Origin: Auanema rhodensis
Taxonomy: Eukaryota > Animalia > Nematoda
DNA length: 64,000 nt
Assembly (NCBI GenBank): GCA_964057225.1
Contig: OZ059897.1
Span: 11,780,001-11,844,000 of the forward strand
Reading direction: 5' to 3'
The translations under genes and the position numbers were made by a program. The number at the start of each line of letters is the position of its first letter. Within the stretch, counting starts at the first letter, position 1. The notes under the pieces are model-generated. The model was not told the origin of the DNA. It ran no database searches and worked only from the letters and a program-made list of their open reading frames with translations. This document shows positions 1-23,117 of the stretch, piece after piece.

Positions 1-482
1 AAAACTAGAACCACATGAACATCCCTTTTCCGCTACAGGGTTATTAACTATTCGGAAAGAAGCTTTCATCAAATCTTCAGCATAATCCAAGGTTGCACCT
101 TTTACATATCCTAGGGAAAGCTGTAAAAGTTTATTATGAACAAAAAAAAGTTATAATTAACCTCATCAATTACGACCTCCACTTGATCATCCTTCCAAAG
201 ATGATCATCGTCATTGATCTTACGATCCACCTTTATTTTGTATTCAAATCCAGAACAACCTCCACCATCAACTTCTACACGTAGTCGTTCTCCTGACTCA
301 AGACAATCCTAAACACCGAGATTGTTCTCCATGTTTATAAATTTTCAAACTTTTAATTGGATTTTCGCCCTCTGTGATACCATAAAATCGCTGGCGGATA
401 AAACTCTAGTGGTGGCAGAAGAACAGAAACTCGTTGACGGAATATGTACAAGCGCTCGAGTTAAGAAAAGACGTGAAAACAT
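1..482 (-). CDS. ISCA2: Iron-sulfur cluster assembly protein A-type (ISCA2/HesB), 3' end runs off the window
   Basis: Spliced minus-strand translation: [13 protein letters not shown] (mitochondrial leader-like), then [16 protein letters not shown] and GCSCGSSF, the conserved HesB/IscA cysteine motifs. Confidence 0.9.
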
Positions 483-891
483 CTTGAACCAATTGTAGAA
501 CAATTTATTTAGAAATTAAATACATTAATAGGCTTAAACCGTTAGATTTAGTTACTTTTAGACTCTGTAAAAGCCTTTATTAACATCTTATTTACACTCT
601 TAGCGAATTATGAAAGTAGCTGATTAAAGCCTATGACAAGAGATGGGGGCAATGTTGCACATTTTGTTTATTGCAGAAATGAAAAGATGAAACTGAATAA
701 TGAGTATATGAGTATACGAGTAAAAATATATGAAATTTGTAAAGCAAGTCCTGTATTAATTGAATCCTATAAGTTGGGGTAAATCAATGCATAAATGAAG
801 AAAAAAAAAAGTTAATTGTTATGAGAAATAAAGAATATACATAGCAGATGCAGGGAAGTAGAATAGATATTAATTATTTATACGAATTTTA

Positions 892-1854
892 TTACCTACG
901 AACAGGTGCGGAAGGACTGGGTTGGTTGACACGACGACGCTGCCGTTCAAATCGTCTTAAAATCAGTATAAGAACTATTGTTAGTACTTGACACTTACCT
1001 CTCCATTTCATCCAATAACCTTGGGGTATAACGAACAACCAACTTAACAGTACCTTGAGCAGACTTTAATAAATCAACAGCCTTCTCATGGCATTCTGTC
1101 TCAACGTTCTAAAAAGTTGTTTAAAATATATAACGAATATTAAACGAATATACCACTCCATTCACAGCAATAAGTTGATCTCCACGCTTTAAACCACCGT
1201 GTCTATCAGCAACACCTCCTGGTATAATTCTAAAGCTTTATCTTGAGATAGAGAAAACAGTAGAATATAAGTGAAAAAGAGAATAATGCACAAAAAATAT
1301 ATGATAAAAACTTAAATAATTTCATATATAAATGAACACGAATTGCAAAAAATATATAAATTTGCAAAAATAACGAAAGAGCGTTAGAAAAACATCGTAC
1401 CTTGATATATATATGGGAGAATTTTGCTCCTTCCCACCCATAACGTTAAAACCTAGTCCTTGATCCGTTTTCGGTAGTTCAACAACACGAGGATGAGCAT
1501 GCCCTTCAGCTGCGGCAAAAGCAGCAACTGTAGCTTTAGCTGTAGCAGATGCTCTAACCTATAATTTCAAGATTAGAAGTATATAGAAAAAAAATAAAAC
1601 CTCTGGAGATCCTTCTATATCTACTGTTTCATAAACACTCTCATAAACTTCACGAACGGTGTTAAAAAATTCGGATTGTAGTATTTTTTGTAGAGTAAGA
1701 AGTTTTGGAGACGAAACTTCTCCCGTTTTTTTGACGTGCTCAATTAACTCAAGAATTCGATGTATATCTGCAATATTAGCTTTAGATAATTACAAAAACC
1801 TGTTGAATTAATACCTCTTTCGAGATTAGGTTTCTCTTGAACAGGACGCTCCAT
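892..1854 (-). CDS. lin-7: LIN-7/Veli/MALS (L27 + PDZ)
   Basis: [21 protein letters not shown]...[68 protein letters not shown]...; ends PVRR-TAA. Confidence 0.97.
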
Positions 1855-2003
1855 GATTATATTAAATCTAAAAAATAAATACAATAATAACACATTTGAA
1901 ATTAATTAAAAAGTAATAAATAACGAAAAACGTCAAGTTTAACAAATAAAGATAAACATACTTTTAAACATTTACTATAAAAAAAATAACAAAAACAAAC
2001 TAT

Positions 2004-2473
2004 TCATATCTCAGCCTTTAACTCAAAAGTTTTGGACATAGGAAACGGAACAACATTAAAAGTTAACTTCCTAATATCAAAATCTTTTTTGTACTCATAT
2101 ATTGACATCTCCGGTATTGCCATATCAGGGTTGATGGTCTCTCTAGTTATTCTCACAACTCCGTCGCAAGTGGATTTTAATAGCTTCTCACCTCTATCAT
2201 TTTCATACACAACCTAGGAAAATAATAATAGTGGAAAACTCATCCAAAGCGCATACATTTAATCCTGGATGATAATTAAATGATCCTTGGCAAACCAATA
2301 ATTCATCTTTCCTCACAATATCACCCTCAGTTCTGTTTATTAACAATATACAAATATGTTTAAATGATAACAAACCTGTAAATTCCTCTATAAGGAATAT
2401 TCCTAGGTGGACGTAATAAATTTCTAACTTGTGTTATATTAGTAGGTTGCCGTAAAAAATTTAAGATATTCAT
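2004..2473 (-). CDS. MRPL27: Mitochondrial ribosomal protein L27 (bL27m)
   Basis: 3 exons: MNILNFLRQPTNITQVRN...EGDIVRKDELLVCQGSFNYHPGLNV...STCDGVVRITRE; resembles the bL27 GxxVxxGxILVRQxxxxxHPGxNV pattern. Confidence 0.8.
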
Positions 2474-2961
2474 CCTATAAATGACAAATAATTAAACTAA
2501 TAATTTCTCAAAAAGCTTGAAAAATATTATTTGCATGCTACATATCAATCATAAGCTGTAAAATTTGAGCGCCCTAAAGCTGCTCCAACGACAAAAAATG
2601 ACCCGTTCAATAATATTGAGCACCGTAGCCTACATATCATACCCATCTAAGCTTTCGAATTTTTGTGATCAAAACTATTTACATTTATTTATAAATTGCC
2701 TGTCGTATTGTATTTTGTTGCTAATCTTATCTATTAGTTTTAAAGGACAAGAGGAGAATGTTGCTCTGTTTCACGCTTTCGTCATTTTTCGAAAAAAAAC
2801 CGTTCTAGTATGTCGTTTTTTAGATGCATTTTCTTTACGTATCAAAACTAGTATTGAGTGGTTCTCCGTATTAACGCTCTTTGTTCGATTCTTTTTCTAT
2901 TGATTTTTGTAATAAACTACTTATTTTCGATTTTCTAGCTTAATTTCGTCTATTTCGTAAA

Positions 2962-3260
2962 ATGGGAAAGCGAAAGTCGAAGAGAAAGCCGCCGCCAAAA
3001 TCTAGAGCTGTAGAGCCCTTGGAAACTCAATTCAATTGCCCTTTTTGTAATCATGAACGAGTATGCGAAGTAAAAATGTAAGATTCTATAGGAAAATTAT
3101 AATTCTAAGTAATAATATGTTCAGGGATCGAGAAAAGAACGTAGGCAAAATTTTTTGCCGTGTTTGCTCTGAGGACTTTCAAACTAATATTAACTATTTG
3201 TCAGAGCCAATTGATGTATACTCTGATTGGATTGACGCATGCGAGCAAGCAAATGCCTAA
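2962..3260 (+). CDS. ELOF1: Transcription elongation factor 1 homolog (Elf1 zinc ribbon)
   Basis: [13 protein letters not shown]...FNCPFCNHE...[10 protein letters not shown]...[17 protein letters not shown]; 2 exons. Confidence 0.97.
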
Positions 3261-3547
3261 TTTGCTTTTTGTACGTTCTTCGTATCTTTATGTTTATAAA
3301 TTGATCTCGTTTACTCACATCTCGTCGATAAAGACGATTAATATTTAATTGTTTTCCTGTATACTTTGTTGCAAGTTTGTAAATATGTCATATGCTCACT
3401 CTAATGAATACGTACCGTTTGACTGTTTATTTTGAAGTGGCCTAATAAATATGTTCAACTATAAATTGTGGCTAAATCTCTCAAAGACTAGGTAATAATG
3501 GTATGGCAAGTAAAATAAGACTATTAAAAAAGATCACGAATAAATGC

Positions 3548-6500
3548 TTAAGATTCAAGCAAAACACAAACTTCTAACAAACATCCAATTGACCAAGCTT
3601 GTGTAGGACAACTATCATGACATTCTTCTCCATCTTTTTGAGTTAGTTCAGGAATGGAAGACCATGGTGAATTCTATATATACATCATTAAGTTATTGAA
3701 CTATTGAATTAATAAATATACCTGGATATGACGGTAATAAGCTCCTAATTTCTTTTGAACTTCAGAGCGTGCTTCATTTAGATATTCTCCTCCCAGCATT
3801 TTTCCTACTGTCAATCTTGCACGCAAATACATTGCTGCTACCCAAACCCATTCCTTTAAATCAAACAATAAGTAATAACAACATGTAAATAATAAAATTA
3901 CAGGTCCTTGATGATAATTCCATCCTTTAGCCGTTTGTTTGTTGGTACTATCATCGGAATTATGATAGAAGCCATTGTACTCCCAGTCACTAAATATGTT
4001 GTCAGTTATATAGAAAAAAACAATAAAATACCTAGGATCCAATGTTTTGAAACCTATTGGGCCTGACAAGTGTTTTCTTGCAGTGTTCAGAGCTTTCCAA
4101 GCCAAATGTAAATCAAGAATTGAGGGACACTACAGTGGTAAAATTTTAGACTAAATTTTAACTCATGGCACTTACAACAGCAATAGCGATAGGGAAGTTA
4201 CATCTTAATTGAAAGTCTGCATATCTAGCAGCAGATCCAAATGTATCTTTAATTATTTCCTTTTTATTGCATAATTCATCAGAGCAATCTTCTGATACAT
4301 AAAATTTGGAAGCAAAGTTTTGCTGAATACGCAACAGCCAATCATTCCAAGACCAATTATCATTTTCTATATTAATGTAATATACTAAATGATAAGACGG
4401 ATATCTTACGGTAAACAACTCCTTTGTACTCAATAAGGTTTTTCTCTGACCATGTTTTCAATTTTTCTAAGACAGCAGCAGCTAAACCTTGAATTTCAAC
4501 AGCAGCTCCATCACGAGGTGTTGCTGGTAGTCCCTTATTACCGGCCTCAAAAAGAATAATATGCTTTCTTTTCATATAATAATATACTTTAGCACTGCTT
4601 CCCATTTTGTCCATCCATGTTCCGCAATTTAGCCGATTTCCTCCATGTATAAAACCGGTATTTTTATCTACCCACACATTAATATTGAATCCTTGAAGTC
4701 ATATACAAACATGATAATTCCATAAAACTTTAACTACCTTCATCTTGCATTTGTTCATCAATAGAATGTCCTGCATTTCTCTCACGGTAACTTATGCCCG
4801 AAAAGTGGCGTTGAAGAGCTTCATACATAGTATTGATTAGAGGTTCTTCCTAAATAGAAGTTTTTTTTTTCCAATTACTATAAAGTCTTTACTTTGCTTT
4901 CTTTACCAAACTGTGTATCATCATGTGGATAAATTCTTAAAACAGTATCTTGAAGAATGGAAAGACCGTTCGGAACTATATCAATATATTTTGTAATAGA
5001 ATAGAGCCAGAACCATACAGCATCTCTACAGTTGTAACGGGAGCCTAGAATTTTTTTGTTCAAGTTACAAGGTATTTTAAAACCTTTTCCTTCTGCAAGA
5101 AGATTAGGGATTAATCCATGTCTTAAACATCCAGCGAAAGATAAAATAATTTTTCTAAAAAATGGATAAAAGCTGAGTTTTTATTATTTAAGAAATACCG
5201 TGCATCATCATAGCGTCCTGTACTTAATAAACAACCTGGAAGGGCAATAAAAGTATCTCTACCCCAATTTCGCCATATTCCTGCAGCAAAATGAGGAAGA
5301 CCAGCAGCTAATGAAGAAGCATTATCACCAAATTTAGATGGCAATGGTGCTAAGGTAGCATCTTTCACATAACCAATAAAGGAAACTGAGCTCAGCATGA
5401 GCATTTTGATCAAAGTCGAATTTGGGCTAAATATATACTTTTGTTGACGAGTAGAAGAATATATCGAACCAATTGAGTTTCTGGAGAAGTACGGTACGGA
5501 CAATATTATATACATGTGTAAGAAGACTTTCGAAGTAACTTGGTCGTAGGTAATACGGTATTACTTGAAGGGGTTTGAATATATTTTCCAATAAACAAGC
5601 AATCTGAAACAAAAAACACACCTATTTTTACTAATAAATTAACTACTTCTGGCAATCCCTCATATTTGTTTAGTCGATTAACGATGAAATCAGCGAGCCA
5701 GAGCCCTTCTCTTAAATTAGAACACAATGGATGACCCAAATCATTATTTTCTCTAATTTTTTTGAAAACTGTCACAATTCCTGTAAAAATATGTTATACG
5801 AGCATTTTCTATGAGATTTGCCTTGCAATCCTCCGAAAACAAATTTTCCAAAGTTGGGTACGTCATATGATTCAATTCCAATGTTAACTCGATCTTCTTC
5901 AGAACAGCAAAAAAGAATGCGGTTGAAATTTAATAAACTTGTTCTCTCCAAAGAATTTTTAAACTCTGAATTAGCAATATTATAATAATAAAAGATTGTT
6001 ACAACTATATACCGCTATCTACAGATCCTTGCAAAACATTTCGAATTTCCTTAATAGCAGAAAGTTGATTATCATCAAGACGAATCCTAGAGAATTGAAA
6101 TTAAATAATCTCCATGAAATTTATTTCTACTTTAATCCAACTACAGATCCACTTGGGAAGTTGACAAGTTCTAGATAATTACCGTGCTGACGAACCATAC
6201 AAGCTTGATCAATTGAAATATGTTCTCGGATTTCAGTCTGATAATCAGATAAGCCAACAATATATTCATCCGAGCCTTTAAAACTTTAAATAAAACATAT
6301 TATAAGTAATTGCTGAACCATTTGAAGATTTTGACTTATTTTCCATCACCTTCATTTCGAACAAAATTTCTTCCAAAACTCCTAAATTTTGTTGTGAGAT
6401 TTAAAAACTGATATTCTCCTACCACCAATCGGAATATGCTTTAAATGAACATCATTTTTAAAAGCATGTTTATCGAATAGTGTATGGCTTATAACAATAA

Positions 6501-9500
6501 CTGTTGAATGATCGACAGGATTGTGTCGTGTAATAGCAACAACCTCGGGATTCATTTGGTCAACAAATGTCTAAACTTATCGAATTTTCCTATATATATA
6601 TATATATATTGAGAAAATGAAATCTATACCTGAGAATAATTGTTTTTTGATAAAGAAACATGTAGATCGTTTAAAATTCTTCTAGCTTTGACGATTCCTA
6701 CTGTATCAAGGATATTCTTATCATATATAGAATACTTTCTAGTTTCATGAACAACATTTATCTAAATAAAAAAAATTACAATATTTCAAAAATAGCAAGC
6801 TTACTGCATAAGGAACGAGTTCGTCATAACCTCTTGTTGATCCGGAAGCACATGTTGCCATTGATACCATTGCAGCAGTTGGAAGAACATCATATACTGA
6901 TCTCACCTATTAAGCAACAAACGTATTTGATCACACCTATCTATTTACCTGTATGGGACTTGGATTGTCGTGAGTTTGATCAAAGAATAATCCATTAGCT
7001 ACAACAGATGGAGCTAACCGCACTGATTTTTGAATCATTGCACCAACACAATCTCCGGAATATCTGAAAGATGTATATATCAATGAGGTTTTCTTATTCT
7101 TTCATTTACCTGTAGACTAGACGTCCTTGTTCATGACTATCATGCGCAGATTCTGCCTCTGAAATAAATGGTTATGAGAAGTAAATAGGCTTACTAAACC
7201 TCTAATCAAAGATGTAATTCCAAGGCGATTTACAAACATATTATCCAAGTCTTCACTTCCCGTAAATAGTTCAGCGAAAACATATAAATCGGGTCTGACC
7301 ACGCGGCCAGCTTTCAGTAAATACTAAAAAACTATTGTTTCATTGAATTTTTCTCTGATAGAATTACCTCTGCAACGTGAATAGGAGTTCCATGAGCATT
7401 ATCTATACGAACACCATGAAAAATTCGAGCACATGCTTCTCTGAAACCACAAAAGATATATGGCACAATATTGAAATGCATACGTGTATTCTTTCATATA
7501 ATTCCATAAATATGGGCAATCTTCGGGTTTAAATCCATAATTCAACTTCACAGAATCTCCCCAGCAGACGAGTTGCCGGCGTAAATATACCTAATACAGT
7601 GGCTTTTAGTGAGAATAATTATCATTCGTTACCTGACTCGAAGGCAATGCAAAATTTTCTAAAACATTGCTAGACATAACCCATCCATTAAATGCCATTA
7701 AAAATTTGGCAGTATCAGAATTGAATGCCAATTTTTCATCATTTTCCCAAGATGTCTCCGGATATAAATGTAAAAAATAACTAAACATTATTATTACTTG
7801 ATTTAGGATCTGATAACCAACTCTGTAGTTAAAGGAGCGTCATCACATACTTTTCCTTTTCTAGGACCATGATCTGCACATCGCTCATAAGTAATATGGC
7901 CCATCACTGCGTTCAAGCCTTCAGATACAATGTTCCATCCTAACTGTTCAGCTAAAACAATTAGTTAATATATCTAAAGTATTAAAATAATAAATACCTT
8001 CTTCATTTAATCTATATAAACAATTTCTGAACTCTGAAGCACACTTCTCAATTCTTTCATTTTCCGAAGAACAATCATCCCTATAAAAAATTAGAAACAT
8101 ATTAAAAGCTATACAAAAAACCTCTGCTTATTATATGCGAGTAATGCAGCTTCCCAATCTATTGTGCAACCAAACCTGGCCCAGTTTGGATCCTGAATTC
8201 GAGCAACAACAGGATGATCTTGGCTGATAATTGGCCCACCTAAAATATTTAACTAGTTCTTTTTAAATATATTAGACTAACTAGAGCATTTCTTTTTGAA
8301 AATATCAACATGAGTATCAACGTTGATTTTGAAAAACTCATGTATGCGAAGTTTAGGTAAAACTTCAGAGCGCAAGACATATTCCAAAGCCTGCAAAAGC
8401 GAAACTTATGGTACCACAAAAAAATATTAAAACTAAACCTGAATATGGTTATGATTGTCAATAACAATTGGAATTCCTCTGTGTTCCCACTTGCCCTCGG
8501 AAACTTCTTTACTAAAGTAATGATAAGCTCTAAATATAAATATTAATAGCATGAACCAATAGTTAATAAACCTATCAACAACGTATGCTGGGCGCATGTG
8601 AGGGCTATTTTCACAGTTGTACGAACATTCTGGATGTTTCTATACTTACCAATGAGTGAATAATCAAAACGAATTTAATTGAACCTGTAGCCATTCAGCA
8701 TTCTTCGCAGCATGATTCCAAACAACGTCTTGAACAGTGAGTAAACCATATTGCTGCTCTAATTTTTTTACAGTGGCATTAACATCTTCTAGAGTATATT
8801 GTTTTCCATTCTTAATATACAACTTATTAATATATTGAGATTGTATTATGTTACGGAATGTATAGTTTGAATTAATTGATGATGATCAGCAATTGAGTAA
8901 CTACTGTTTGAGATACCCAATTTTTGTATTGGTGTAAGATGGATCATGTTATAGCCCGATTCAGCAGCAAAACTTAAACGCTGCTCCCATTCTGGCAGTT
9001 CGCCTAAATTATCTGTTTAATCAATGATTGTAATTTACATGCTACCTAAGAGTTTCGTTAGGTAAGTTTGACATACTACTCCTCCAATAGGCAAAGGATT
9101 CTTATTGATACTTAATGAAGGCATAACTAAGAAATAGCCATTTCCTTTAACATCCTTCCTTAAAATATATTTTGTGTCCGTGATACTTCTCAATAAATCA
9201 TATATCAAACTACTCACTCCTCATTAAGCTCAAAGAAGTACTCAAATGAACCAGCAGACTGGCAAACAACATCGATATAATTACTGGTTTGATCCAACCC
9301 TCCAATCCATTTCAAAGGTTCATTGCCTAACAGTATTAGATACTACATTGATCTTAACAGGAAAATTACCAGTCAAGCTAGTCCGCAAAGTCACTCTTGA
9401 ACCAAGCAAAGAAGATCCACAAACAAATCTCACAACCCATCCTATACATAAGTTAGTGATACCTTTGCTTAAAGTTACTCAAAATGAAGCCAACCTTTTT

Positions 9501-9567
9501 CATATCGTTTAACAACTTTATCAAAACAACCAATTTCCAAGACAATTACGCGCACTTCGTTAGCCAT
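3548..9567 (-). CDS. agl-1: Glycogen debranching enzyme (AGL)
   Basis: Motifs [105 protein letters not shown]; many short introns. Confidence 0.97.
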
Positions 9568-10030
9568 GATTAGAACGTCAAGATGAGGCAAGTATTTCAG
9601 AATAGGAAGCTTGAGGAGTATATCAGCCGTTTCTTATATTCGTTTCATATATCTAATAGATTGTCAATGTTTAAAGCATGTGGCCCAGTGTGTACGTGAT
9701 TTTCACAAACTCCCTTCTTGATCGCATTCTCTATCCTTGTCTTGTCCAAAGAACACAAGCTAAATGTTTTTATCGAGGTCTTACCACGATTTCTTTCAGA
9801 CCTTTATTATATGATTCAATCTTAATATTTTTAAAGTTATAATTTTTTCTAAAATTTAAGTATTTGATATATGCTAATAATCTTTTGAAAAATATAATTC
9901 GGCTGAGGACTTGAATATTTCAGTTCAGTAATAAATGAAAATGATCATCCATTAAAAATTAGTGGTTAAATTCTATATATTTTACAGATAACTCAAACAT
10001 ATTTAGACCTAGTTAAGGACATAACATCTA

Positions 10031-11228
10031 ATGGCAAACGCTAATATGTATGATTTTTTAAAGTTTTTTTAAAGTAAATATAAATGTTTTAGTTTGAGTT
10101 CCGCCCCAGAAGTTGGAAGTTGGGCTGAGGAAGTTCAGCAGAACAGTACGCTTTTGTGTTTTTTTGACTTTACTTTATTTTTGCTTTATTTAGCTCAATC
10201 CCAAGTTGATAAAGATGGTATAAGAACTGTCGTAGATTATGTTGTTGAAGATGAAACCCGTTACAAAGTAAGTGTTTTTTGGTCATTATGTTTGAATATT
10301 ATAACAATTGACAGATCGTAACTAAATTCCAAATTATCCACAAGAAAGTACCTAAAGTTGTAGCTGATAGAAAGAAATGGAAGAAGTTTGGGGAAAGCGA
10401 AGGAGATGCTCCAGGACCACAGGTAGTACTCTTATAATAACTCTTATATTTGTTTTCTAAAGGTTGCTACAACTTATGTTGCTGAAGAAGTTGAAATGCA
10501 ATTCACAAGAAATCGTGCCGGAGAACAGATTTTGGATGTACAAGAAGACAAGCAGATTGTACTCATTAATAATTACTTAATAATTTATTAATTTCTGCGT
10601 TTAGATCAAGGCTACTAATAGAGAACATTGTCGCTATTGTAAGGGTAACGATCATTGGTCGACTAGCTGTCCTTACAAGGTTTTTTTACTTGTTGTGTAC
10701 ATCATATTGTACCTTTTCACTGTAGGAGATGTATAATATGGAAGATGAAAATGAACTTGTCGAAGATAAGACTGGATTCGGAGGTAGAAATATACTAAAT
10801 GGCCGCGGGGATCTTCGTGGAGGAAACATGGACCGACGATCTGACGAAAACACATGCCGTGTCACAAATATGCCTCAAGAATTAGAAGAAGCTGAATTGC
10901 GTGAGATGTTCTCCGCCATTGGACGTGTTGCTGTAAGTTGGCAATTCTCTGAATGTTTTATATTATGATGTTGCAGCGTGTGTTTATTGCTCGTGACAAA
11001 ATTACAAATCAGCCTAAGGGATTCGCTTTCGTTACATACGAACATCGTCATGTAAGTATCTTCATGTAGGCTTTAATGGAATTATTTATTTTAAAGGAGG
11101 CTGAACGAGCTATTGCTGAATTGAATGGAAAGCCTAAGTATCACATGATCCTCAAGGTTGAATGGACAAGGTCAGTGATTAAAATTTAATATATTAAATA
11201 GTAATTGTTCTTTAGGCCAAATAGTTAA
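10031..11228 (+). CDS. eif-3.G: Eukaryotic translation initiation factor 3 subunit G
   Basis: VADRKKWKKFGES, CRYCKGNDHWSTSCPYK zinc knuckle, RRM (TCRVTNMPQ...KGFAFVTY); 10 exons. Confidence 0.96.
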
Positions 11229-11425
11229 TACAGGCTTAGCCACACTCTTCTTTGGGAAATGGGGAGACCGTTCGATTTTTGTTGACGTTTTATTATTTTT
11301 TTTTCGTATGTAAAACCAATAAATTGTTACGAATTTTAGTAAACTGTGCTTTAATAGGTAGTTTACCTATATTTGTAATTTTTAAAAATTAAGTTGTTAT
11401 TATGTTTTTTCTTTTTTTGAGGAAT

Positions 11426-12112
11426 ATGGGTTTATTAACAATTTTGCGAAAACAAAGGGAAAAGGAAAGAGAAATGAGAGTTCTCGTGTTGGGGCTAGAC
11501 AATGCTGGTAAAACTACAATAGTCAAAAAGTTTTTGGGAGAAGATTTGTCTACTATTGAGCCAACTTTAGGTAGTTCATGCTAAATTTTCTTCAAGTTAA
11601 TTTTTTGTATCAGGCTTTAATATAAAAACTGTTGACTTTCGCGGATTCACATTGAATTTATGGGACGTTGGAGGGCAGAAAAGTTTAAGATCATATTGGA
11701 GAAATTATTTCGAACAAACAGATGCTCTCATATGGGTTGTGGATTCGGGAGACAGAGGTCAAATAGTATACATAACATCTATTTATTATCTTTTCCTTTC
11801 AGATAGACTTTTATCTTGTGCAGCAGAGTTAAAAAAGTTGTTGACCGAGGAACGACTTTTCGGCGCCTCTCTTATAGTCTTAGCTAATAAACAAGATCTT
11901 CCAAACGCTATACGTGTTGCGGATATTGCTAAAGTAAACTTTATAATTATAACCTTTTTGTATGTTTATTCTCTTAGTTACTGGATCTGGATTCTATTCA
12001 AACCCATCACTGGCAGATATATAGTTGTAGTGCTATGACGGGTCAAAATCTACTGGAAGGTATGACGTGGTTGTGTAATGATGTGGCTAGCAGAGTTTTC
12101 ACATTGGAATAA
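11426..12112 (+). CDS. evl-20: ADP-ribosylation factor-like protein 2 (ARL2)
   Basis: [57 protein letters not shown]; 4 exons. Confidence 0.96.
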
Positions 12113-12197
12113 TGTGCTCCAGTTAGTATTTTATTGTTTTATTCGTTTTCTATTCAATTTTTTTCGGGTTTTTTGAACAGCTTTTTCAACTGGTTCA

Positions 12198-12582
12198 TAT
12201 TAGGTGCGCGCAAAAGTTTCTGGCCACCCACATTGAAATTTGAATAAATATTTAAAAATTAAAAATTAGCATAAACCAAATTTAAAATTATATTTAAAAG
12301 TGTTTTAATTTTAAATTACGTGAAAATTTTTCTTATTTCTACTTTAAATTTTGGTTTTGCTCTCGTTTTTTAAAATGGCTTTTGAAAAAGAACACATCCG
12401 TAATTGTCTTGTCTTTCTACCAAGGTTTAAATACTTTGAAAGCTTATGAAATTCTTCAATCCACTTATGGTGAAGATATACTTTCTTATAGTACCTATAA
12501 ATCATGGTACGTCAGATTTAAATCTACCAACTTGGATCTGGAAGACCGTCCAAGATCTGGAATTCCGCATCCGATCTCATAA
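12198..12582 (+). mobile_element. Truncated Tc1/mariner element (left TIR plus frameshifted transposase N-terminal HTH)
   Basis: TA followed by TTAGGTGCGCGCAAAAGTTTCTGGCCAC (mariner-type TIR start); ATG 12375 MAFEKEHIRNCLVF then a frameshift to YQGLNTLKAYEILQSTYGEDILSYSTYKSWYVRFKSTNLDLEDRPRSG (mariner HTH); no DDD domain or right TIR seen. Confidence 0.85.
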
Positions 12583-12928
12583 CATTTTTTGTTAACCAGG
12601 ACCATTAGTATCCAAGAATTCTGTAACAGTTTTTTTTCAAGATTTGAAAGAACCTTTCTTTATTACAAAATAATTTGTCATTTTTTGTAGCAATGATTGT
12701 TGTTTTTCATATTCATATGGTTTTGTTTTATTGATCTCATTTTTTTTATTTATACCGTTTTAGTCTCGTATTAATTCTGTACTTTTATACTTGTTGTCCA
12801 ATGCCCTATTATGTGCATGCATATTTATACTAATAAACAGCAAATTGTATTTTATTATATTGACACGTTGCATCAATATACTCTCCTCCTGTTGAGATGT
12901 CTCCATATTCGCAATTATGCAAATCAAT

Positions 12929-13062
12929 GGTTATTCTGCGGGCCGCCGCGCAATGGCCTGCGACGCGGCTGCGATCAGCTGACTGACAATCCTCAGTCTT
13001 CTGAATGGCAACCAACAGCAACGTACTACTTCTGACTTGGGATACGTTTCAGAGTTATAACC
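12929..13062 (+). ncRNA. Candidate structured non-coding RNA (about 134 nt, closing stem plus three hairpins), family unknown
   Basis: Ends pair (GGTTATTCTG / CAGAGTTATAACC); hairpins GGCCGC..GCGGCT, TCAG-GACTGA/TCAGTC-CTGA, AACGTA/TACGTT; GC-rich island in AT-rich DNA; T5 at 13076-13080. Confidence 0.45.
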
Positions 13063-13722
13063 TGCTTAGATGTCGTTTTTAAACTTTCTTGGCCTGTATG
13101 GGTTCAACTGTGTTTCGTTTTCACTTCTTCGAAAATATTTCTTTGACTTCAACTAATTTGGTATTGTCCTCATTTTCATTGATCTTTTCTGTTGGCAGGC
13201 TGCTGGTCTTGTGACTGCTGGTGTTTTCAGAAAACATTCCTGTCATTCATGCTTATATTTCAGAAAATTCGCTTTATCTTGAATGACATTCACAGATTTT
13301 CTCATTGTATCCGAGTTTTTCATATTACTTAGCCCTATGAATCTTAAACTGGCTTTAAAAATATATTAGAGAAATTTGAGATATTCCTGATTTGATCTGA
13401 TGGGATTTCTTATAACATTAGTATATTGTGATCAAAATTATGTTCGTGAGTCTCACCATCATAAAGTTCCAATTCTATGACTGAATGCTTAACATTTTAT
13501 TAATTATACGGGTTTTTCTCTTTCCGTCTTGAATTAAAAGTGAAACACCATAAGTAGGCAGAAACAAAATGTTGCAACCATACTATAGACTGAGAAAATC
13601 AGTGAGAAAAGAAGGGATAGAAGTAGACGACTAGGATGCCAAGAGAAGAACGCGAGAGATAGAGAAAGAAACGAAAAGAAAGACGCAAACTAGAGAATCA
13701 TATGGTCTCTCTCAAACGTAAA

Positions 13723-13732
13723 ATCACGTGAT
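13723..13732. promoter_or_regulatory. Palindromic E-box ATCACGTGAT (CLEAR-like, TFEB/HLH-30-type site)
   Basis: Exact TCACGTGA core about 100 nt before the first TTTTCAG acceptor (13830) upstream of the NBR1-like gene. Confidence 0.5.
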
Positions 13733-14970
13733 TGCCGCATGCGTCTGGGGCTAATTTCTAGTTGAATTGTTGAAACATCTTGGCTGTTTGTTTTCCTCAA
13801 AGATATCTTTTGATATGATAATATTTTCAGAACATTTAAAAGATTTCTCTTGCAGTTGTTAAGTTAGCTATTAAGTTTCAGTCCAAGAGCTTACGAAACG
13901 TTTCCTCTTCTGAACCCTAGATCAATATTTGGTGACCGCCTCCTACGTTCATCAGAATGCAGAACTTATACAACTGCTCGGTCGAATATTTGTATATTCT
14001 CTCCGTATTATTATACCTATTTTGATCAAAATAATCTATTAGTATACATTGTTTTTTGCCTTTGAATATATTTCAGCTTTTATCTTGATTTATACATTCA
14101 CTACTTCATATTTTTTCCATCTTGATGCTGAAATGTTCCAAATGCTGGTTCATCTAATTTGTTTTCGTGTTGTCATATGTGCACATAGACTATTCAGCTG
14201 ATGAGCAGCTGTTTCTACCAGAAGCCGCCTGCTCTACTCTCTGTTCTGTCAGCTATTAGAACCGAAAGGGCAAGTTTCTGTTCTCGATTTTGGTTTGTAC
14301 AACGCAGGGCGATCATCTGTGAATTTCTCATACTCTCTTATGTAGTTCCAATTCCGTTTTATTGCTTAGAATTCCGATTTATGATTTGCAAATTTGATGA
14401 GTTTAACCTTTGAGAAAGGGGAACGATGGTCTTTGTCCTGGGCATAGTATAACAAGAGAGAGATGGTAACTGATGTATTTATATCATAAAAGGAATAGAA
14501 GAAAGAAAGGTGAAAAAAAAGAGAGAAATACGAGCTAGCTGTGACGCCCGTAGGCAAAACTTTAATAATGCTCGTTATTATTCTCATGTAATTTGCCACA
14601 TTTAAAACCGGCTGCCGCAACAGGCTAGAATGTTTCTTTCTTTTCTTTATTTCAACATAAATATGAAAAAAAGAAGTTATTTATTGATACATCTAATTTT
14701 TCTCTCATTACCTTTATATTGTCATGTCTTCAGTATGCTTCGAGCTTTTTTTAGAATATTTTTTCATTTGTAACTTTGAAATTTAGTATAATTTTTACAG
14801 AGGGGTAGTTGAAACTAGCAGATTTCTTCTCAGTCTTCATATTCTTCTTGCAAATCCTGGTAAAACATCACAACCGAGCGCAATATTCATCTCTATATAT
14901 ATACTCCGAAGTCTGGAACAATATATTTCTAAATTATCTTCTACTGCTTCGTTGAAAACTTGTGGCCAAA

Positions 14971-17900
14971 ATGGTAGTTCTGAAGTTTTGCTCCGGTAAC
15001 TGGGAAGTTCTTACTCTTCTTATCGGTCATGAGCATAATGTTGTTCTGTCTTCTCGTTGGGTCGCTCGCAAAATCAAGTGAGTTTGTTTTGATGAGAGCA
15101 AATTCATTTAACAAATAGATATGATGACATACATACAACAGTTATTTACAATATTTTAATCATTCGTTGTTTTTATTTCAGCGAAGTAATTGCTTACTCG
15201 GAAACAACATATACTGTTGATAATGTGTTGGATATGGAAAGAAAATATTGCTCTTTAACTGAAGAAGGAATTTATGTGAGTATATATATATATAATCATA
15301 CAAATATAGTCATAAGCATTTGTTAATGCCATGTAATCAGTGAAAGACAAAATATTGATTGTGCTCAATATTCCTAATCGACATTGTTCTATTGATAGAG
15401 CTTCTTAAAAGCATGTGCTGTAGAGTGTTTATTTTCCGAATGATCGGCTTCTATTGCACACGATAACGTTAACTCAATATCTTTCACCAATGAAAAAATA
15501 ATGAATATTGAGAGCATTAATAACTATATATGAATAAATTAAGAAAACAAGTTATTGAGAAATAAATTTTAGCATCTTCTTCTGGATGCTCATATGTATC
15601 ACTATTCCCTGATCCGATTTTATTTGGACGATGTGGTATGTACGGCACCAAAAACCTTCATTTTTGGAGAGGTATTTTCATAGAAAGAAAATATATAGCG
15701 GTATATAAACTTATTATCTTGAAGAGTGAAGAAGATTTTCAACCTGACATTGGACTCAATACAACTCCTGAGTCTGAATCGATGACTGACATTGAGCTTA
15801 GACAATTCTTGACAATGCTTGAGAGTCGCCAGCATTCTATTATGGTGAGTGTTCTTAAAGATACGAATATCTAATGCTTTTGCATATATTTGCTTCTCAA
15901 ATCATAAACTATTGGAATGGATATATCTTCTTTTTTTTTCAGACAGCTGCTAGGATGACTCAAGAACAACAAGAACGTCTCTTGGCGTCATGTGAATCAA
16001 GCGTAAGTTTCAGGGCAAAGTCCTTTGTCTTCTATTTTACAAACTGCGGAATCGCAAGACGAGACACATAATGCACTTATACATGTTTTTTCAGGAGGAG
16101 AAGAACGTTTGGGACATAGACTTAGAAAGAGCTTTCATGCCAGACGTAAGTGATGGTTTATATATTTATGTTTTATCTATTCTATTGTTTTTTTTCATTT
16201 TACTTTGATACATAAGTTTAGATGCCAGCTCCTGATAATCAGGAAGAATATTTTGATCCCATCTGTTGTACTTCTGAGGCTACACGTGTTGATCATTTCG
16301 TGGACGCGCTTTTTGATTTCGCGAAAAAGGAAGAGCTTGATGGAGTCCCCTGTACATTATCGAATACGTTTGGAAAAGTTAGTTTAAATTAAGAAAAAAA
16401 GATAACGAAAAGAAATGCACTATAAACAATTTTCTTGATAGGATTTTTCTGATCATAAGGTAAACGCTAAGTACACTTGATTTCAGAAAACTGAGAACAT
16501 GTCTCTAAATACCTCATTGTCTAGTACAATGATATCTGAAAAAATAGTTAAACAAGATGAAGCTCAACAGACAACTTTAAATTCTGAGGAGGTTTTTAAT
16601 TTTATTATGAAGCTATTTGTTCAATTCTTGCTTTATTAGATTTTGAGCTCAAAGGCGTATCTTAATTTGCCTTACGACTATTTAATCCCGGATATTAGTG
16701 ACGAATCTAATGAAAATAGTTCTGATGATTTACCAGAGGAGTCTAGCAACTCCCTGTCTAAGAACAACTCTCAAGCATCGGTTGAATGTGATTATAAAGA
16801 GCGATTAGCTTTAGAATTAGAGAAATTTGTAAGTTCACGAAACAATTAAAGCTATATGTACCCATTTCTTTCAAGAAATCGTGGCCCGATGCTGGCTTTA
16901 AACAGGTGGATGTCAAATCTGCCGAAATTCAAACTAGTCAAACAGAAGGAGCTCTGTCAATGACTACAGCAACAAGTACCGATATTGAAGGCAAACTTAA
17001 TATGGTTCCTGTGCAAACTCAAACGGAATTGAAACTGTTACTGGAGTTAAAGAAGGTTAATCAATTAAAATTGAAAACAAATATTAAACAACATAAAACT
17101 TGTTTTTATTTTTTAAAATTATTTTTCTTGAGATAAGCCATTGATAACAAACTTGAAAGATTCTTTCATGTCTCATTTCTTTTATGTCTCATCAATTATC
17201 TATTATGTTATAAGAAATATTTTCATCATTAATCAATCAATTTTTTAATTTAATTTAATTTTAGATGAGTGATACCTATTGCTGCCCTCAATCAACTCGT
17301 ATTCGTTGTGGTGCTAAGGCTAAGGTTATTAAAAAGGTAAATTAATTTTCTTGAAGTGAAACTAGGTAATCTTTCTAGAAAAAGAGTCCTGTAAAAACTG
17401 ATAATGAGGTGTCTGCTTCATTCTCGGCCTCTGATTCTAAGGAAAAGACTGTTAAAAACTTCGCAGATGTATCACGTGAGCAAGCTACAGGAGTTGTGAA
17501 GAAAAGTATGAAGAAGGAGTCAAAAGAGAAAAAGGAGGCCAAGGAGAAGAAAGAAACTAAGGATAAGAAGGAAACTAGGGATAAAAAGGATGGAAAAGAG
17601 AAGAAGCGCAAGGCTTCTATTGTTCTTGCTCTTTCTTCAGCAAAATCTAATAAAGAAAAAGCAATTGTTCGTAAAGAACCGTGCCCAGTGTACCAGTCTT
17701 ACAAGAAAACTACCTATCATCAATATTTCCCTGAAGAGCCTGTTAGACCAAAAGCTGGAGAAATGCTTGTTCTTCACTCCTTTGACGAATTGCCCATTGA
17801 GCAAATGGAGGAACTCAATATTGTTCGTGTTGACGGAAAGAACTTCAAGGTATTTTTTTAAACTTTATTTTCATTAATTTTTATTATTTTTTTCTAGAAA

Positions 17901-18952
17901 GTCAAGACCCAACCAAAGTGTGTTATGCGACCTCTTCATCGTATGCCAATTTTGAACAGTATTGTTGCTCCTGAACCATGCTTAGTTTTCACTGAGGTTT
18001 GTTTGAAGCTCTAAGTTTTAAATTGGATTGCTTATTTACAGGAATCCGATTTTATTCCTACCGAAGGAAATGGACTTATAAAATATTTCCGCATAAAAAA
18101 TATTGGCAAAAAGATAGTTCATTGGCCTAATGTGAGTGATTAATTGATCTTTATTATTATTGAACGTTTTATTTCAGATTGTTGTCAGACATGTTTTCAA
18201 CTTAGATCTCTTAGATCTATCGGTACTTCCAATTTCTATTGATGTAGAAAAGGAAGTTGATATAGAAGTAGGAGTTGAAATCAAAGATACCTCTTTGGAA
18301 GGCGTTCTTATCATTCAAATTGTTGGAGATATTATTCTTTCAACTCCAACTGCCCTTATTGTGCCAAAAGTAATTAGACATGCAAAAAGTCTGAAACATT
18401 ATCTGAATAATTTCAGCTTCAAAATTCGATTGGTTCATTTGAAGAGAATCAAACTGCTGGAATTACTGGTCCAACAAAGTGCTTCATGATCGGAGATGGA
18501 TCGGACACTTCTTCAACATCGGTACTGCCATTAAATCACAATTCCCATAATATATTTATATCTTGTTTCAGTCTAACGACTGTGATCCAACATTCATTCC
18601 TGAGCTACCTCTGAGCTTTGAATCATCAACAAAAGAAGAAACAGTATCTTTGATTGGCTATTGTTCTTCATCATCTTCTCTATCAACAGCTAGAGAACCT
18701 GAACAAGATGTAATTTGTTTTGGTGCCTTTTTATTCTTATAGACTATTTTCTAGAACTTGGAAGAAGAGGAAGAAAACGTTGTTAGTGCTCCAGAAGTTG
18801 CTTTTGATTGTGATGCTGAGTATAACTCTGATAAAGCTGATGGGGAGAACGCAGAATACAGCGATGAAGATACATCTGATGAAGAGTTTGAATTTGTTGG
18901 AAGTGACGATCAACTTTCTAATTATGAATATAACGAATTATCTGAGGATTAA
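14971..18952 (+). CDS. Divergent NBR1-like protein (PB1-like, KE-rich coiled coil, FW/NBR1-like Ig domain, acidic tail with LIR); no ZZ or UBA seen
   Basis: 18 GT-AG exons join into one open frame from gccaaaATG 14971: MVVLKFCSGNWEVLTLLIG...VLDMERKYCSLTEEGIYHLLL; KKESKEKKEAKEKKETKDKK; LIKYFRIKNIGKKIVHWPN...DTSLEGVL; SDEEFEFV near the C-terminus. The gene model is solid; the family call is by eye. Confidence 0.6.
17519..17610 (+). repeat. Coding 18-nt imperfect tandem repeat (KKExKE/KKETKD units)
   Basis: aagaaagaaactaaggat aagaaggaaactagggat and related units within exon 12 of the NBR1-like gene. Confidence 0.7.
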
Positions 18953-19636
18953 TACTTTTACCTACCTCACAGATTCTTTAATCGAAAAGAACTCATGGAT
19001 TTTCAAAAATATTCAATATGATTAGTAACACTGTTTAAAAATGTCCTAACGTCTACTGTATAGCACTGTAAATATTTTGAGGAATTCAATATCCTTGTTT
19101 CATACTGCTTTAGCCAATACGCAACAGTGATACCGTAGTCTAGTTATTAACCGTTCAGCTAGTTTTTGTGGTCTTTCTTTGAGGAAGTATTTCCCTTGTA
19201 TATAAGTGTGATAAACAATTCTTTTTTAATTTTGTTTTAAATATATTCGTTATCTTTCAATTCTATTTCTCATTAAAACAAATCATTTGAAACGTGAAAG
19301 AAAAACATGTAGACATATCTTGTGACACTTTTAAATGGGTGAACCTCGTATTGATGAACAACAACACAAAGCTAAAACAAGTAGCCGGCGTAGTCGGAAT
19401 ATCGCAACGTTTTATTAGATTACATAATTACAAAGTATAATAAAAGAATCATATAATTCAAAAATTAAAAGAACTATTAAACTATTCTCGTTATGAAGTT
19501 ATATACCCATCATTTACTCCTGTTTTATCATATCTCAGTTTTCATTAAAGTACAATATATTTATATTAAATTTTAAATAAATTGCTTTCAGACCGTAAAT
19601 AAACAATACTATCTTTCATTAATTATTATCATAACA

Positions 19637-20194: not shown

Positions 20195-23117
20195 CTATTT
20201 ATCTATCAGTCCTAACTCTCGAGCTTCCTTTTCAGCCCATTCTTGTAATTCTTTTTCATTTTCCATCGGAGAATCATCTCCACAGATGGCATCAATATAA
20301 AAGGATCCTTAAATGAAAAATTCAATAAGGTTATTTTTGATATTTCTTACGTTGAGCTGTTAAGGTTTCAAATTCATCGTCCGAATTGTCGCCGTCAGAT
20401 TCTTTAAATAAACTGTATTTCAAGATTGTACAATTTGACTTACCACTTCTAATTTTAAATTGTGAGGATTGGCTTGATGTAAGACTCATCATTGCCGAAT
20501 AATCACTAAAATCAACAATAACTCTACTACCGCGTACTGATAGTTTTGCTGAATCTACGGCTGTTCCACCAACTACTATTGTAACATTTCCCAAATTATT
20601 AGTTGGGAAACTCTTAATTAATGTTTGTACAGAATCACTTGTTATCTAAAATAAATTATATAAATTAATAATAGAACATTTATATATTACCAGCATGGAC
20701 CCACTTAAATCTACATGTTTCAAATTTTTACAATGAGATAATCCTTTAACTCCATCATCATTTAAATATGTACAATTTCGAACTTGGAGAACTTGTAGAC
20801 TACAGCAATGTGCTATTTCTAGCAAAATACCGGATCGTACAGCTCCAATTGATGATATATCAAGCTTAAATATTTCTAAATATATTCTGTTAGAATATAT
20901 TTTAATACCTGTTCTAAGCAAGTTAGTTTGGCAAGAGCGCTAAGTCCTTTATCGGATATAGATTGATCAGTACCAGCATTAGCCAAGCTGATAGTTCTCA
21001 TATTTTTGGTATGCTGAGAAAGAGCGATCAAAAAATTATCATCGACCAGCGGATTATAGTCTAGTGCTAATTCAGTTAAGTTCTTTAGCCTAGTTAGATG
21101 TGATAAGCCTTCAAAAGTTAAATGCGCAAATTTATCTCCACATAATGTGAAAACTTGTAAATCTTCCATTGTACGAGATATTATACTAAAAGCATAATGA
21201 ATATACTCATAAAATAGTAAAATATATACCTTAATATGCCATCAGTTATATTATAACATTCATTTACACGTAGTTCTTTAATAGTGCTGGATGCAGTGCA
21301 TAAATCCTCAAAAGCCATGGCATCGACGTTGGTACATCCATCAAAATATAACTAAAAAAACAGAATCACCTATATATACATATATATATATAATAAAAAT
21401 TACTTACAATTTCCAGTTGATTACTTAATAGCTTGGTAAATCTTCCATGTATTTTACTACAGCCTCGCAAGTCAAGAAAAACCAGATTTTTAGCAAAACC
21501 GCGTATCAAATACCAAATTGACTGCAATATTTGAAATTTTATATAATCTAGAAAAGTTTTTATTAACCTTGTCTCCTACTGTGGGCATATCTCTATAGGA
21601 CAAACGTGTAATGTTGGTTAAACTCTCAGAAAGTTCACCAAATGCTTCCCAATTAGCTCGAATACCCGATAGATCAATCTAAATATTGCAATATAATTTT
21701 TTTTTAATTTATAAAATACTTTACCTCTTCTAATGAAGAGCAACTTTGAGCAATAACTGTAAGCGCTTTTTCATCCATAAGATGGACAAGCCCTGATAAA
21801 TCTAATGATCTTAAATGAGCTCCAGCTCTTCGAAGAATTGCCTTAAAAAAACAATTTAAACATAATAATAATATCTTAAACCCACTCTTAAATGACTAGT
21901 CCGGAGAGGGTTATGTTTACCAAAAGTATATTCCTTAGCAAAACTCAACTTATTAATATGGGACCAAGACTAAATTTGAATTAAGCTGACATCATCTGTA
22001 TTAACATACCTTCACAGAAGCCTCCATAAATTTTTTATTAACTCGTTCTAGTCGAATAGTGTCCGAAATAGGCAAATAGCAAAATATTCTCTCCAGAATT
22101 TTAGAATTTAAATCAGCTAACGATACATTCTTAAAGCATTAAAATAAACTTCATTATAAATCACTATACTAACATCTCCGGATACAGTTTTTGATGTCGA
22201 ACACAAAGATTGACTTGAAGAAGCTCTTGATAATGAATCCTGCCCATCATCTTGAACAAAGTAAAACGTAACAATATTTTCCTCTTTCAATATTACCTTT
22301 CGAATGATCAGCAAGCACTAACCCTTTACAACCTTTTCGTTTGGATACAAACTAAAAGAAGCAACTTATTCAATCAAAACAATTTTTAAAATACCTTTGT
22401 GACCACCATAACATTATCATAAAACTTTAATTGCTCACTTGTAGCATTCAAAGCTTTTTCAGCATCTTCTTTCAATCTAAATTTCAATTTTGAAAATAAA
22501 TTACGAAAACAATGATACTTGAATGTAAGCACAGCATTCCCACTGTTTTTGGAGTTCTTGGATAATCCACCAAAAAAGGATCTTTTCTCATCTCCAGTTA
22601 ATGAACAATGAGTAACCTAAATATTAAAATTTAAAATTTAATTTATATAATACCAACTTTTCCAAATTGAGAAAAAAAGCTCTGTAATTGTGACTGTGTT
22701 ACTCGCTGAGATACATTGGTTACTGTAAGTTTTCTTTCATCCTTCGAGTTAGCATGGAATGCTAGCATTGAATCAAAATCTCAAGCAAAAGGTATTACAA
22801 AATTAAATTATAATAAAAAAATACCATCAGTTTCGATATTATCAAATTCTTGCCCATCGGCTAAAATCATTGGTAATAGTCTGCGATATTTCATAAACTC
22901 AACAGCAGAATGAGACCATGTCCTCCTACAAATGACCAATCAATTAACTAATATTCATATTATCATTTTTCAAAGTTAAAAAAATTATTATAAACCTCAA
23001 TTTTCCGACACTGAAAAAACGAGCACGCGTTACAAAACTTTGAAAAGCTTCACTCATATCATTCAGACCTCTGCTTTCAAGATTTTGACCATGCAGTCGT
23101 CTAAGCGCTTTAAACAT
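20195..23117 (-). CDS. RRM + F-box + LRR protein (EEED8.10-like putative RNA-binding protein)
   Basis: RRM ERKLTVTNVSQRVTQSQLQSFFSQFGKV; F-box LNSKILERIFCYLPISDTIRLERVNKK; multiple LxxLxLxxCxxIxD repeats; ATG 23117 follows a TTTAG acceptor. Confidence 0.85.

Follow-up and report, generated by a model that had tools for sequence, protein, structure and literature searches.

A spliced and expressed gene of 18 exons in the nematode Auanema rhodensis encodes a protein with a layout resembling that of NBR1 and Atg19, which we tentatively read as a modular adaptor working like a ubiquitin-independent soluble autophagy receptor, by a mechanism that we infer. The gene lies in the window, the 64,000-nucleotide stretch of contig OZ059897.1 analysed here. 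From the N-terminus, the protein would be formed by a ubiquitin-like/PB1-like module of ~100 aa, conserved helices, a near-invariant acidic-aromatic peptide followed by a helix, a K/E-rich linker, a conserved block, then an Ig-like beta-sandwich and, lastly, an acidic, phosphorylatable tail containing a conserved LIR-type core.

Gene structure and expression

The 18 exons are joined as one gene by spliced RNA contigs from four runs (Table 1). Every intron is bounded by GT..AG, with acceptors mostly of the TTTCAG type, and the reading frame is uninterrupted through every exon junction, for 841 codons. Transcript contigs of ~2.9 kb with all the introns skipped were found in the four RNA runs. 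Introns 10 and 17 are absent among the listed joints, and their removal was deduced from contig arithmetic, since the portion of the contig within 14900-19100 (2745 nt) equals the sum of 71 nt of 5′UTR, 2526 nt of CDS and 148 nt of 3′UTR. The GT/AG sites, the open frame and the RNA contigs uphold the single-protein join of 18 exons proposed by the first-pass annotation, and the joint from exon 1 to 15182, which it had named as a check, is present in the RNA contigs. Its exon chain stood overall, except for the end of exon 3, placed at 15671 by the RNA and not at 15635; with the donor at 15671/15672 instead of 15635/15636, the protein has 841 rather than 829 aa, and the 12 residues thus added have counterparts in the alignment to the ortholog P0001.

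Table 1. Features of the gene in the window (positions counted from the first nucleotide of the window; P0001, ortholog from Auanema sp. JU1783)
Feature	Position	Strand	Basis or identity to ortholog
CDS, 841 aa + stop	14971..18952	+	frame/splice check, 4 RNA runs, full-length alignment to P0001
Exons 1-6	14971-15077, 15182-15275, 15573-15671, 15725-15844, 15943-16002, 16095-16145	+	
Exons 7-12	16222-16377, 16487-16591, 16640-16828, 16876-17055, 17265-17336, 17379-17849	+	
Exons 13-18	17898-17996, 18042-18131, 18178-18369, 18417-18521, 18572-18709, 18755-18952	+	
Exon 3, donor corrected to 15671/15672	15573..15671	+	joint 15669->15723 (cut +2) in 4/4 runs
Exon 1 to exon 2 splice	15077/15182	+	RNA contig joint
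Other RNA joints, first set	15275/15573, 15844/15943, 16002/16095, 16145/16222, 16377/16487, 16591/16640	+	
Other RNA joints, second set	16828/16876, 17336/17379, 17849/17898, 17996/18042, 18131/18178, 18369/18417, 18521/18572	+	
N-terminal module, residues 1-100	14971..15671	+	65-70% identical
Acidic linker, then predicted long helix (exons 4-6)	15725..16145	+	AF2 secondary structure, alignment
Most conserved stretch	16222..16341	+	88% identical over 40 aa (alignment A5)
Acidic-aromatic peptide EE[YF]FDPI	16243-16263	+	conserved [WFY]xx[LIV] core, acidic context
Ser/Thr-rich conserved block (exon 10)	16936..17031	+	57% identical inside poorly conserved region
Lys/Glu-rich charged stretch	17511..17612	+	sequence
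Pre-Ig conserved block (end of exon 12, most of exon 13)	17733..17963, intron 17850-17897 excluded	+	62-72% identical
Ig-like beta-sandwich, ~105 aa (end of exon 13, exons 14 and 15)	17964..18369, introns excluded	+	low-confidence model
Ser/Thr/Asp/Glu-rich tail (exons 16-18)	18417..18949	+	20-30% identity, many gaps
LIR-type motif SDEEFEFV	18875..18898	+	motif scan on alignment
Second aromatic cluster YEYNEL, near C-terminus	18923..18940	+	alignment; ortholog YEYV

In searches covering ~5.8 billion proteins, 1.84 billion representatives and the JGI metagenomes, the sole relative found was P0001, an unnamed protein of 911 aa from Auanema sp. JU1783. An exhaustive phmmer search of the 1.84 billion representatives with exon 12 gave this protein as its single match; word-indexed searches of the 5.8 billion proteins (with the whole ortholog, residues 1-235 or residues 548-742) recovered nothing but the query, and no relative was detected in the JGI metagenomes scanned with the best-conserved peptides. 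The two proteins begin with an identical MVVLKFCSGN and share the conserved blocks, but P0001 has 70 more residues, most of them within linkers, its beta domain is devoid of Trp, and its tail core is YELV where the window protein has FEFV. P0001 is unannotated and has no Pfam domain. It served, together with exon pieces, as a proxy for the spliced window protein in the Pfam, AF2 and homology searches. An eIF3g-Arl2 neighbourhood upstream of the gene is common to both species; a literature look-up of the C. elegans F22B5 genes beside the eif-3.G/evl-20 pair (which we take to be F22B5.2/F22B5.1) yielded no candidate ortholog. On the best reading, the gene is fast-evolving and lineage-restricted, and in public data it is confined to this genome and that of Auanema sp. 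JU1783.

The scarcity of database homologs is the sole point in favour of the exon chain being a chance artefact, or a pseudogene from which no protein is made. However, all 17 introns are spliced out in contigs from four runs, the length of which fits the model exactly, the 841-codon frame is open, and the ortholog, 47% identical from end to end, shows block-wise conservation as well as conserved gene neighbours. An artefact or pseudogene is thus extremely improbable, and is refuted at the RNA level: the gene is genuine, spliced and expressed.

The N-terminal module and the middle region

Residues 1-100 show, by eye, a beta-beta-alpha-beta-beta-alpha-beta pattern, the first strand of which contains Lys5. 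The closest ESM Atlas clusters by structure were PB1 domains, in most of the ten rows, with weak TM scores of 0.54-0.61 that span ~80 residues of an ESMFold model of overall pLDDT 0.40; by features, the nearest named clusters were other ubiquitin-like families (0.78-0.86). Pfam PB1 had no match at E<=10 in the exon pieces or the ortholog, and sequence and profile searches of the PDB found no PB1 chain. The AF2 model of the N-terminal 235 aa (pLDDT 39) was uninformative, and a Foldseek search with it came back empty. For the PB1 domain proposed at first pass there is a weak likeness in shape and no Pfam or PDB match; to call the module ubiquitin-like or PB1-like has the strength of a lead only.

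In the segment encoded by exons 4-6, which is 45-60% identical between the two proteins, AF2 predicts a helix with low confidence (ortholog residues 129-178), a possible self-association segment. Within the most conserved stretch, the peptide EE[YF]FDPIC is kept in both Auanema proteins, and an amphipathic helix is predicted after it; the FDPI core of the peptide is LIR-type and also resembles the core of a FFAT motif. The FFAT core, EFFDAxE, binds MSP domains, and its position 5 is usually a small residue; the Auanema peptide fits the consensus at positions 1-4, with Pro at position 5 and Cys at position 7. Further downstream, the Lys/Glu-rich stretch may form a charged single helix or a linker, and is also NLS-like in sequence; the corresponding stretch of the ortholog matches it in composition, not in sequence. 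Exon 11 encodes the only Cys-rich piece of the protein. Its Cys residues were considered as a ZZ remnant, which was rejected as they are not conserved in the ortholog.

A search for the ZZ zinc finger and for UBA with Pfam (E<=10, exon pieces and ortholog) gave no match, for UBA also over ortholog residues 740-911, the protein ending in an acidic tail; all Pfam matches, on ten exon translations, the whole ortholog and eight ortholog cuts, were sub-threshold noise. The first-pass annotation, which had seen neither a ZZ nor a UBA, was correct in this respect.

The Ig-like domain and descent from NBR1

The region encoded by exons 13-15 is modelled, with low confidence, as an Ig-like sandwich of eight strands (our two structure models have pLDDT values of 45 and 39), and follows the best-conserved long block of the protein, in which AF2 is unconfident. 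The NBR1 FW domain has a signature of four Trp residues, against one in the Ig-like domain of the window protein and none in that of the ortholog. Pfam N_BRCA1_IG (FW, PF16158) gave no match at E<=10 with the exon pieces or with the ortholog, whole or cut, and phmmer and profile searches of the PDB found neither NBR1 nor ILRUN. Fold searches with the low-confidence model returned generic Ig/FN3-like domains; FW, ILRUN, Atg19 and Atg34 were absent from the best 50 of 48,161 PDB representatives and from the best 30 Swiss-Prot models. The residues on which an FW alignment had been proposed did not hold up either: the W of HWP and the LEG are unconserved, the ortholog having RFA and KEA.

Among the soluble receptors of autophagy, NBR1 is seen as the ancestral one, which nematodes, insects and crustaceans are held to have lost (PMC9582228). 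A true but highly diverged NBR1 ortholog (PB1-CC-FW-LIR, stripped of ZZ and UBA) surviving in this nematode lineage would agree with the module order, shared with NBR1/Atg19, and with PB1 domains being the shapes nearest to residues 1-100. In addition, the segment [LI]KYFR[IL]KNIGK and its spacing to the next NL resemble FW strands by eye, as a lead only, and Atg19 and Atg34 are a precedent for NBR1 homologs that have lost all sequence similarity. Against these points stand the Pfam results for PB1, FW, ZZ and UBA, the PDB searches, the missing four-Trp signature, the unconserved W and LEG, both lists of fold matches and the ASH/MSP-type neighbours of the Ig domain (see below). Furthermore, the family is found in two genomes only; survival of NBR1 therefore needs many independent losses among nematodes, or divergence beyond recognition. 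We consider such an ortholog unlikely, and the diverged-NBR1 identity given at first pass found no support from Pfam, the PDB searches or the four-Trp signature, nor a match in the top fold lists. It is likewise improbable that the protein is a nematode relic of NBR1 which, like Atg19/Atg34, moved past sequence recognition, shed ZZ and UBA and became a ubiquitin-independent receptor, with cargo bound directly by its Ig-like domain and LGG-1/LGG-2 by its C-terminal LIR. Membership of, or descent from, the NBR1 family is not established; deep homology is possible because Atg19 and Atg34, too, were recognised as NBR1 homologs by fold only (PMC9582228).

A scaffold outside autophagy

The named language-model clusters nearest to the Ig domain were NPHP4-Ig, MSP, HYDIN/CFAP65 and Cep192/ASH, with scores of 0.88-0.89, which fall short of the 0.9 that the tool sets for more than a lead; the ten best matches (10/10) all come from a single group of related families. 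With exon 15 alone, the ESM Atlas was uninformative. The domain also carries a hydrophobic-x-hydrophobic-x-N-x-G strand signature, typical of the ASH/MSP/PapD-like superfamily. Pfam Motile_Sperm, ASH and HYDIN-Ig had no match in the exon pieces or the ortholog, and no MSP or VAP structure was among the top matches of the fold searches. Thus, MSP or another Ig fold, the outcome that the first-pass annotation had set against its own assignment, appears among the language-model neighbours at lead strength only, and MSP does not appear among the Pfam matches or in the top fold lists.

A rival explanation, about as tentative as the autophagy adaptor, is that the Ig domain is of the ASH/MSP/PapD-like kind and the protein a lineage-specific scaffold acting outside autophagy in cilia, centrosomes or sperm, or at ER contacts via the FFAT-like EE[YF]FDPI; the acidic-aromatic motifs of the tail would then serve another interaction or represent CK2-type acidic clusters. 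Besides the language-model neighbours and the strand signature, the resemblance of the best-conserved peptide to the FFAT core is in line with such a scaffold, as are the K/E-rich and acidic regions, frequent in centrosomal and nuclear scaffolds. However, the scores lie under the 0.9 line, the Pfam and fold searches are negative, the FFAT-like peptide has Pro at position 5, and conservation of the LIR-type core in the tail is left unexplained.

The acidic tail and the proposed function

The tail encoded by exons 16-18 is probably disordered, and Pfam had no match in that of the ortholog. The motifs quoted in the first-pass annotation are all present, SDEEFEFV at exactly the position given there. 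Its core, F821-E-F-V824 (18887-18898), is preceded by six residues that are all acidic or Ser/Thr, and FEFV aligns with YELV (SSDEYELV) in the only ortholog. At the level of the motif, the proposed LIR is therefore retained, as a candidate core in an acidic tail that is kept as YELV in the ortholog. The second cluster, YEYNEL/YEYV, has a [Y]xx[LV] core in each protein, offset by two residues between them.

In the autophagy adaptor that we tentatively favour, the N-terminal module and the helices would serve in oligomerisation, or in docking to a further PB1 protein, for instance SQST-1. A partner or cargo would be contacted directly through the beta-sandwich, and Atg8-family proteins (LGG-1/LGG-2), perhaps along with the FIP200/EPG-7 scaffold, through the tail motif. 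Several points speak against this adaptor: a [WFY]xx[LIV] core by itself is frequent, with 15 occurrences in the window protein; the structure models are of low confidence and the PB1 TM scores are low; the ASH/MSP/HYDIN-type neighbours point to ciliary, centrosomal or trafficking proteins; and the K-rich stretch and acidic tail equally fit a nuclear or nucleolar protein.

Discussion

The putative order of modules in the window protein (a ubiquitin-like/PB1-like N-terminus, helices, an Ig-like sandwich and an acidic region, rich in Ser/Thr, that holds a LIR-type motif) is that of NBR1. However, the window protein has no PB1 or FW similarity detectable by sequence or profile, and lacks the four Trp, the ZZ, the UBA and the amphipathic helix of NBR1; moreover, its LIR-type motif is at the extreme C-terminus and its family is confined to two genomes. 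With Atg19 and Atg34 it shares the lack of both ZZ and UBA, a tentatively PB1-like N-terminus, helices, a predicted 8-strand Ig-like domain (the cargo domain in Atg19/Atg34) and a C-terminal motif, Atg8-binding in yeast and LIR-type here, placed after phosphorylatable acidic residues and with extra aromatic motifs nearby. Yet 2KZB and 2KZK have no fold match to the window protein in any top list, and the latter is animal and not fungal, twice as long, and contains additional conserved blocks as well as a K/E-rich linker.

The ASH/MSP/PapD-like Ig proteins (HYDIN, CFAP65, Cep192/SPD-2, NPHP4 and VAP) are likened to the window protein by the language-model clusters and the strand signature ending in N-x-G, but not by Pfam or by a top structural match to MSP/ASH entries, and in none of these families does the Ig domain occur together with both a PB1-like N-terminus and an acidic LIR tail. 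Nematodes have kept SQST-1/p62, a receptor of PB1-LIR-UBA type, whose N-terminal PB1 module, with its first-strand Lys, and acidic LIR have putative counterparts in the window protein; p62, however, has a ZZ and a UBA and no Ig-like domain, and no sequence similarity was detected.

If the tail motif does not bind Atg8, the gene would be an ordinary fast-evolving orphan scaffold. A nematode protein with PB1-like, Ig-like and LIR modules would otherwise be either a hidden survivor of NBR1 or an independent reinvention of the receptor design. Each would bear on the evolution of selective autophagy receptors, and would offer a new handle on cargo selection in Auanema, a genetically tractable, three-sexed group of nematodes.

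A transcribed 18-exon gene with a single ortholog

The gene at 14971-18952 consists of 18 open exon segments on the + strand, with GT..AG at every intron, nematode-type acceptors and exon boundaries that, the first excepted, fall between codons. In four RNA runs, all from a single 2019 study, one intron-skipping transcript contig of ~2.9 kb was found per run, which bears out the 18-exon join that the first-pass annotation had proposed from sequence. The joints listed for these contigs include 15077/15182, the splice from exon 1 that was critical to that proposal, and fourteen more that agree with the model. Two further junctions, 17055/17265 and 18709/18755, are absent from the listed joints and were deduced from contig arithmetic: 70 letters separate the piece that ends at 17055 from the one that begins at 17377, that is, exon 11 minus two ambiguous letters, and the 243 letters from 18369 to 18755 equal exons 16 and 17. 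The junction of intron 10 is missing from the listing because an AT-rich repeat was masked when the reads were placed. The contig letters within 14900-19100 (2745) correspond exactly to 71 nt of 5'UTR, 2526 nt of CDS and 148 nt of 3'UTR. An artefact is excluded as an explanation of the gene. The ortholog begins with an identical N-terminus, in support of the start codon at 14971.

Exon 3 ends with two in-frame GT donors 36 nt apart (GTATGT after 15635 and GTATTT after 15671). The sole error of the first-pass gene model was its choice of the former (15635/15636); the RNA uses 15671/15672 instead, adding 12 residues that are matched in the ortholog, and the protein therefore has 841 residues. 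Only the distal donor was seen in the contigs, which drop rare isoforms; the proximal donor may see minor use.

The protein lacks both an annotation and a named relative. With the largest exon as query, an exhaustive HMMER search of 1.84 billion representatives matched one protein, P0001, an unnamed 911-aa product of Auanema sp. JU1783 with 47% identity over an end-to-end alignment. When 5.8 billion proteins were searched by word index, with the complete ortholog, its first 235 residues or its residues 548-742 as queries, P0001 alone came back, and two scans of JGI metagenomes that used the most strongly conserved peptides gave no relative. Upstream of P0001 lie eIF3g and then an Arl2-type GTPase, the same pair as in the window at about 10.1-12.1 kb, the counterpart of the eif-3.G/evl-20 operon pair in C. 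elegans. The 18-exon gene is real and orthologous between the two genomes; having a single ortholog and no other relative in these searches, it is either lineage-restricted or evolving too fast for sequence tracing. Directly downstream in the window (20331-21527, - strand) are ORF pieces whose translations resemble an F-box/LRR-type leucine-rich-repeat protein, and downstream of the ortholog two short products of 75 and 131 aa are called (L001, the ortholog's locus, 14633-15858, - strand), neither with a Pfam match. As these downstream genes differ, synteny may end on the 3' side.

Features of the gene, its neighbours and its product (window coordinates unless residues or L001 are stated)
Feature	Position	Identity to ortholog	Remarks
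eIF3g-like gene (RRM)	about 10094-10968 (+)		ORF pieces
Arl2-type GTPase gene	about 11402-12040 (+)		ORF pieces, after eIF3g-like gene (pair: 10094-12100)
eIF3g/Arl2 pair upstream of ortholog	L001 5284-7433		Auanema sp. JU1783
Intron 10	17056-17264		209 nt; AT-rich short repeat around 17235-17271
N-terminal module	residues 1-80	65-70%	
Residues 153-229	residues 153-229	about 60%	40-aa core within, 88%
F188-D-P-I core			inside EE[YF]FDPI, near-invariant peptide
Ser/Thr-rich block	residues 341-376	57%	
Block preceding beta domain	residues 530-609	62-72%	
Beta domain	residues 610-689	43-45%	
Remaining residues, including most of acidic tail		12-30%, gapped	poorly conserved
SDEEFEFV motif	18875-18898		holds the core F821-E-F-V; ortholog SSDEYELV
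Tail end	last 27 residues	41%	

Conserved motifs and fold of the protein

The two proteins share seven [WFY]xx[LIV] cores at aligned positions; of these, only F188-D-P-I and F821-E-F-V have acidic surroundings that are probably unstructured. About 15 bare LIR cores are to be expected in a protein this long, and mere presence therefore means little. The tail motif named in the first-pass annotation is found exactly where it had been placed and aligns with an ortholog counterpart; the real evidence for this putative LIR-type core is its conservation within an otherwise free-drifting tail. A second aromatic cluster near the C-terminus reads YEYNEL in the window protein and YEYV in the ortholog.

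Pfam gave nothing above noise for any exon, the ortholog in full or eight cuts of it, and sequence and profile searches of the PDB returned no NBR1, ILRUN, PB1 or MSP chain. AlphaFold, given two sequences only, performed poorly: its model for ortholog residues 545-750 had a mean pLDDT of 45 and contained a single beta domain of eight strands at pLDDT 53-63, and the N-terminal model (pLDDT 39) was unusable. For residues 1-100, the feature neighbours were ubiquitin-like families (Kindlin F0, PI3K p85-binding, RA, TUG-UBL1, CIDE-N) and the shape neighbours in the ESM Atlas mostly PB1 domains (TM 0.54-0.61). By eye, the secondary structure here runs strand-strand-helix-strand-strand-helix-strand, and the first strand (VVLKF) contains a Lys, as in the PB1 basic-type pattern; as a lead, the N-terminus may belong to that type.

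Relation to NBR1 and possible function

An NBR1 homolog needs an FW domain at minimum, plus PB1 or ZZ; NBR1 is considered secondarily lost in nematodes, and Atg19 and Atg34 are counted as homologs by fold only (Rasmussen et al., 2022; PMC9582228). The FW-like region that the first-pass annotation had seen in exons 13-15 failed at the sequence level: there is no profile match, the four-Trp set is missing (one Trp in the window protein and none in the ortholog, versus four), and in place of the W and LEG taken as FW residues the ortholog has RFA and KEA. Both ZZ and UBA are missing, as had been noted. The models available for fold-level comparison with FW and PB1 are poor. Thus, the NBR1/Atg19-like layout stands, but membership is not established; the module order is similar, whereas parts that define such a system are either lacking or unproven here, and strict descent from NBR1 is improbable.

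Tentatively, we favor a receptor-like protein, in which the N-terminal beta-grasp module and helices would oligomerise the protein or dock it onto another PB1 protein, the beta-sandwich would bind a partner or cargo, and the conserved aromatic core of a phosphorylatable acidic tail would bind Atg8-family proteins. The sole directional hint for the beta domain is towards the ASH/MSP class: in the ESM Atlas language-model search it lay nearest to NPHP4-Ig, MSP, HYDIN/CFAP65 and Cep192/ASH clusters, at 0.88-0.89, under the tool's cut-off of 0.9. A scaffold that carries an ASH/MSP-type domain and acts outside autophagy has roughly the same likelihood as the receptor; under that reading, the near-invariant EE[YF]FDPI peptide might serve as an FFAT-like ligand. 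As yet, the 18-exon gene leaves standing the view that NBR1 is missing from nematodes, and its product merits structural and binding examination.
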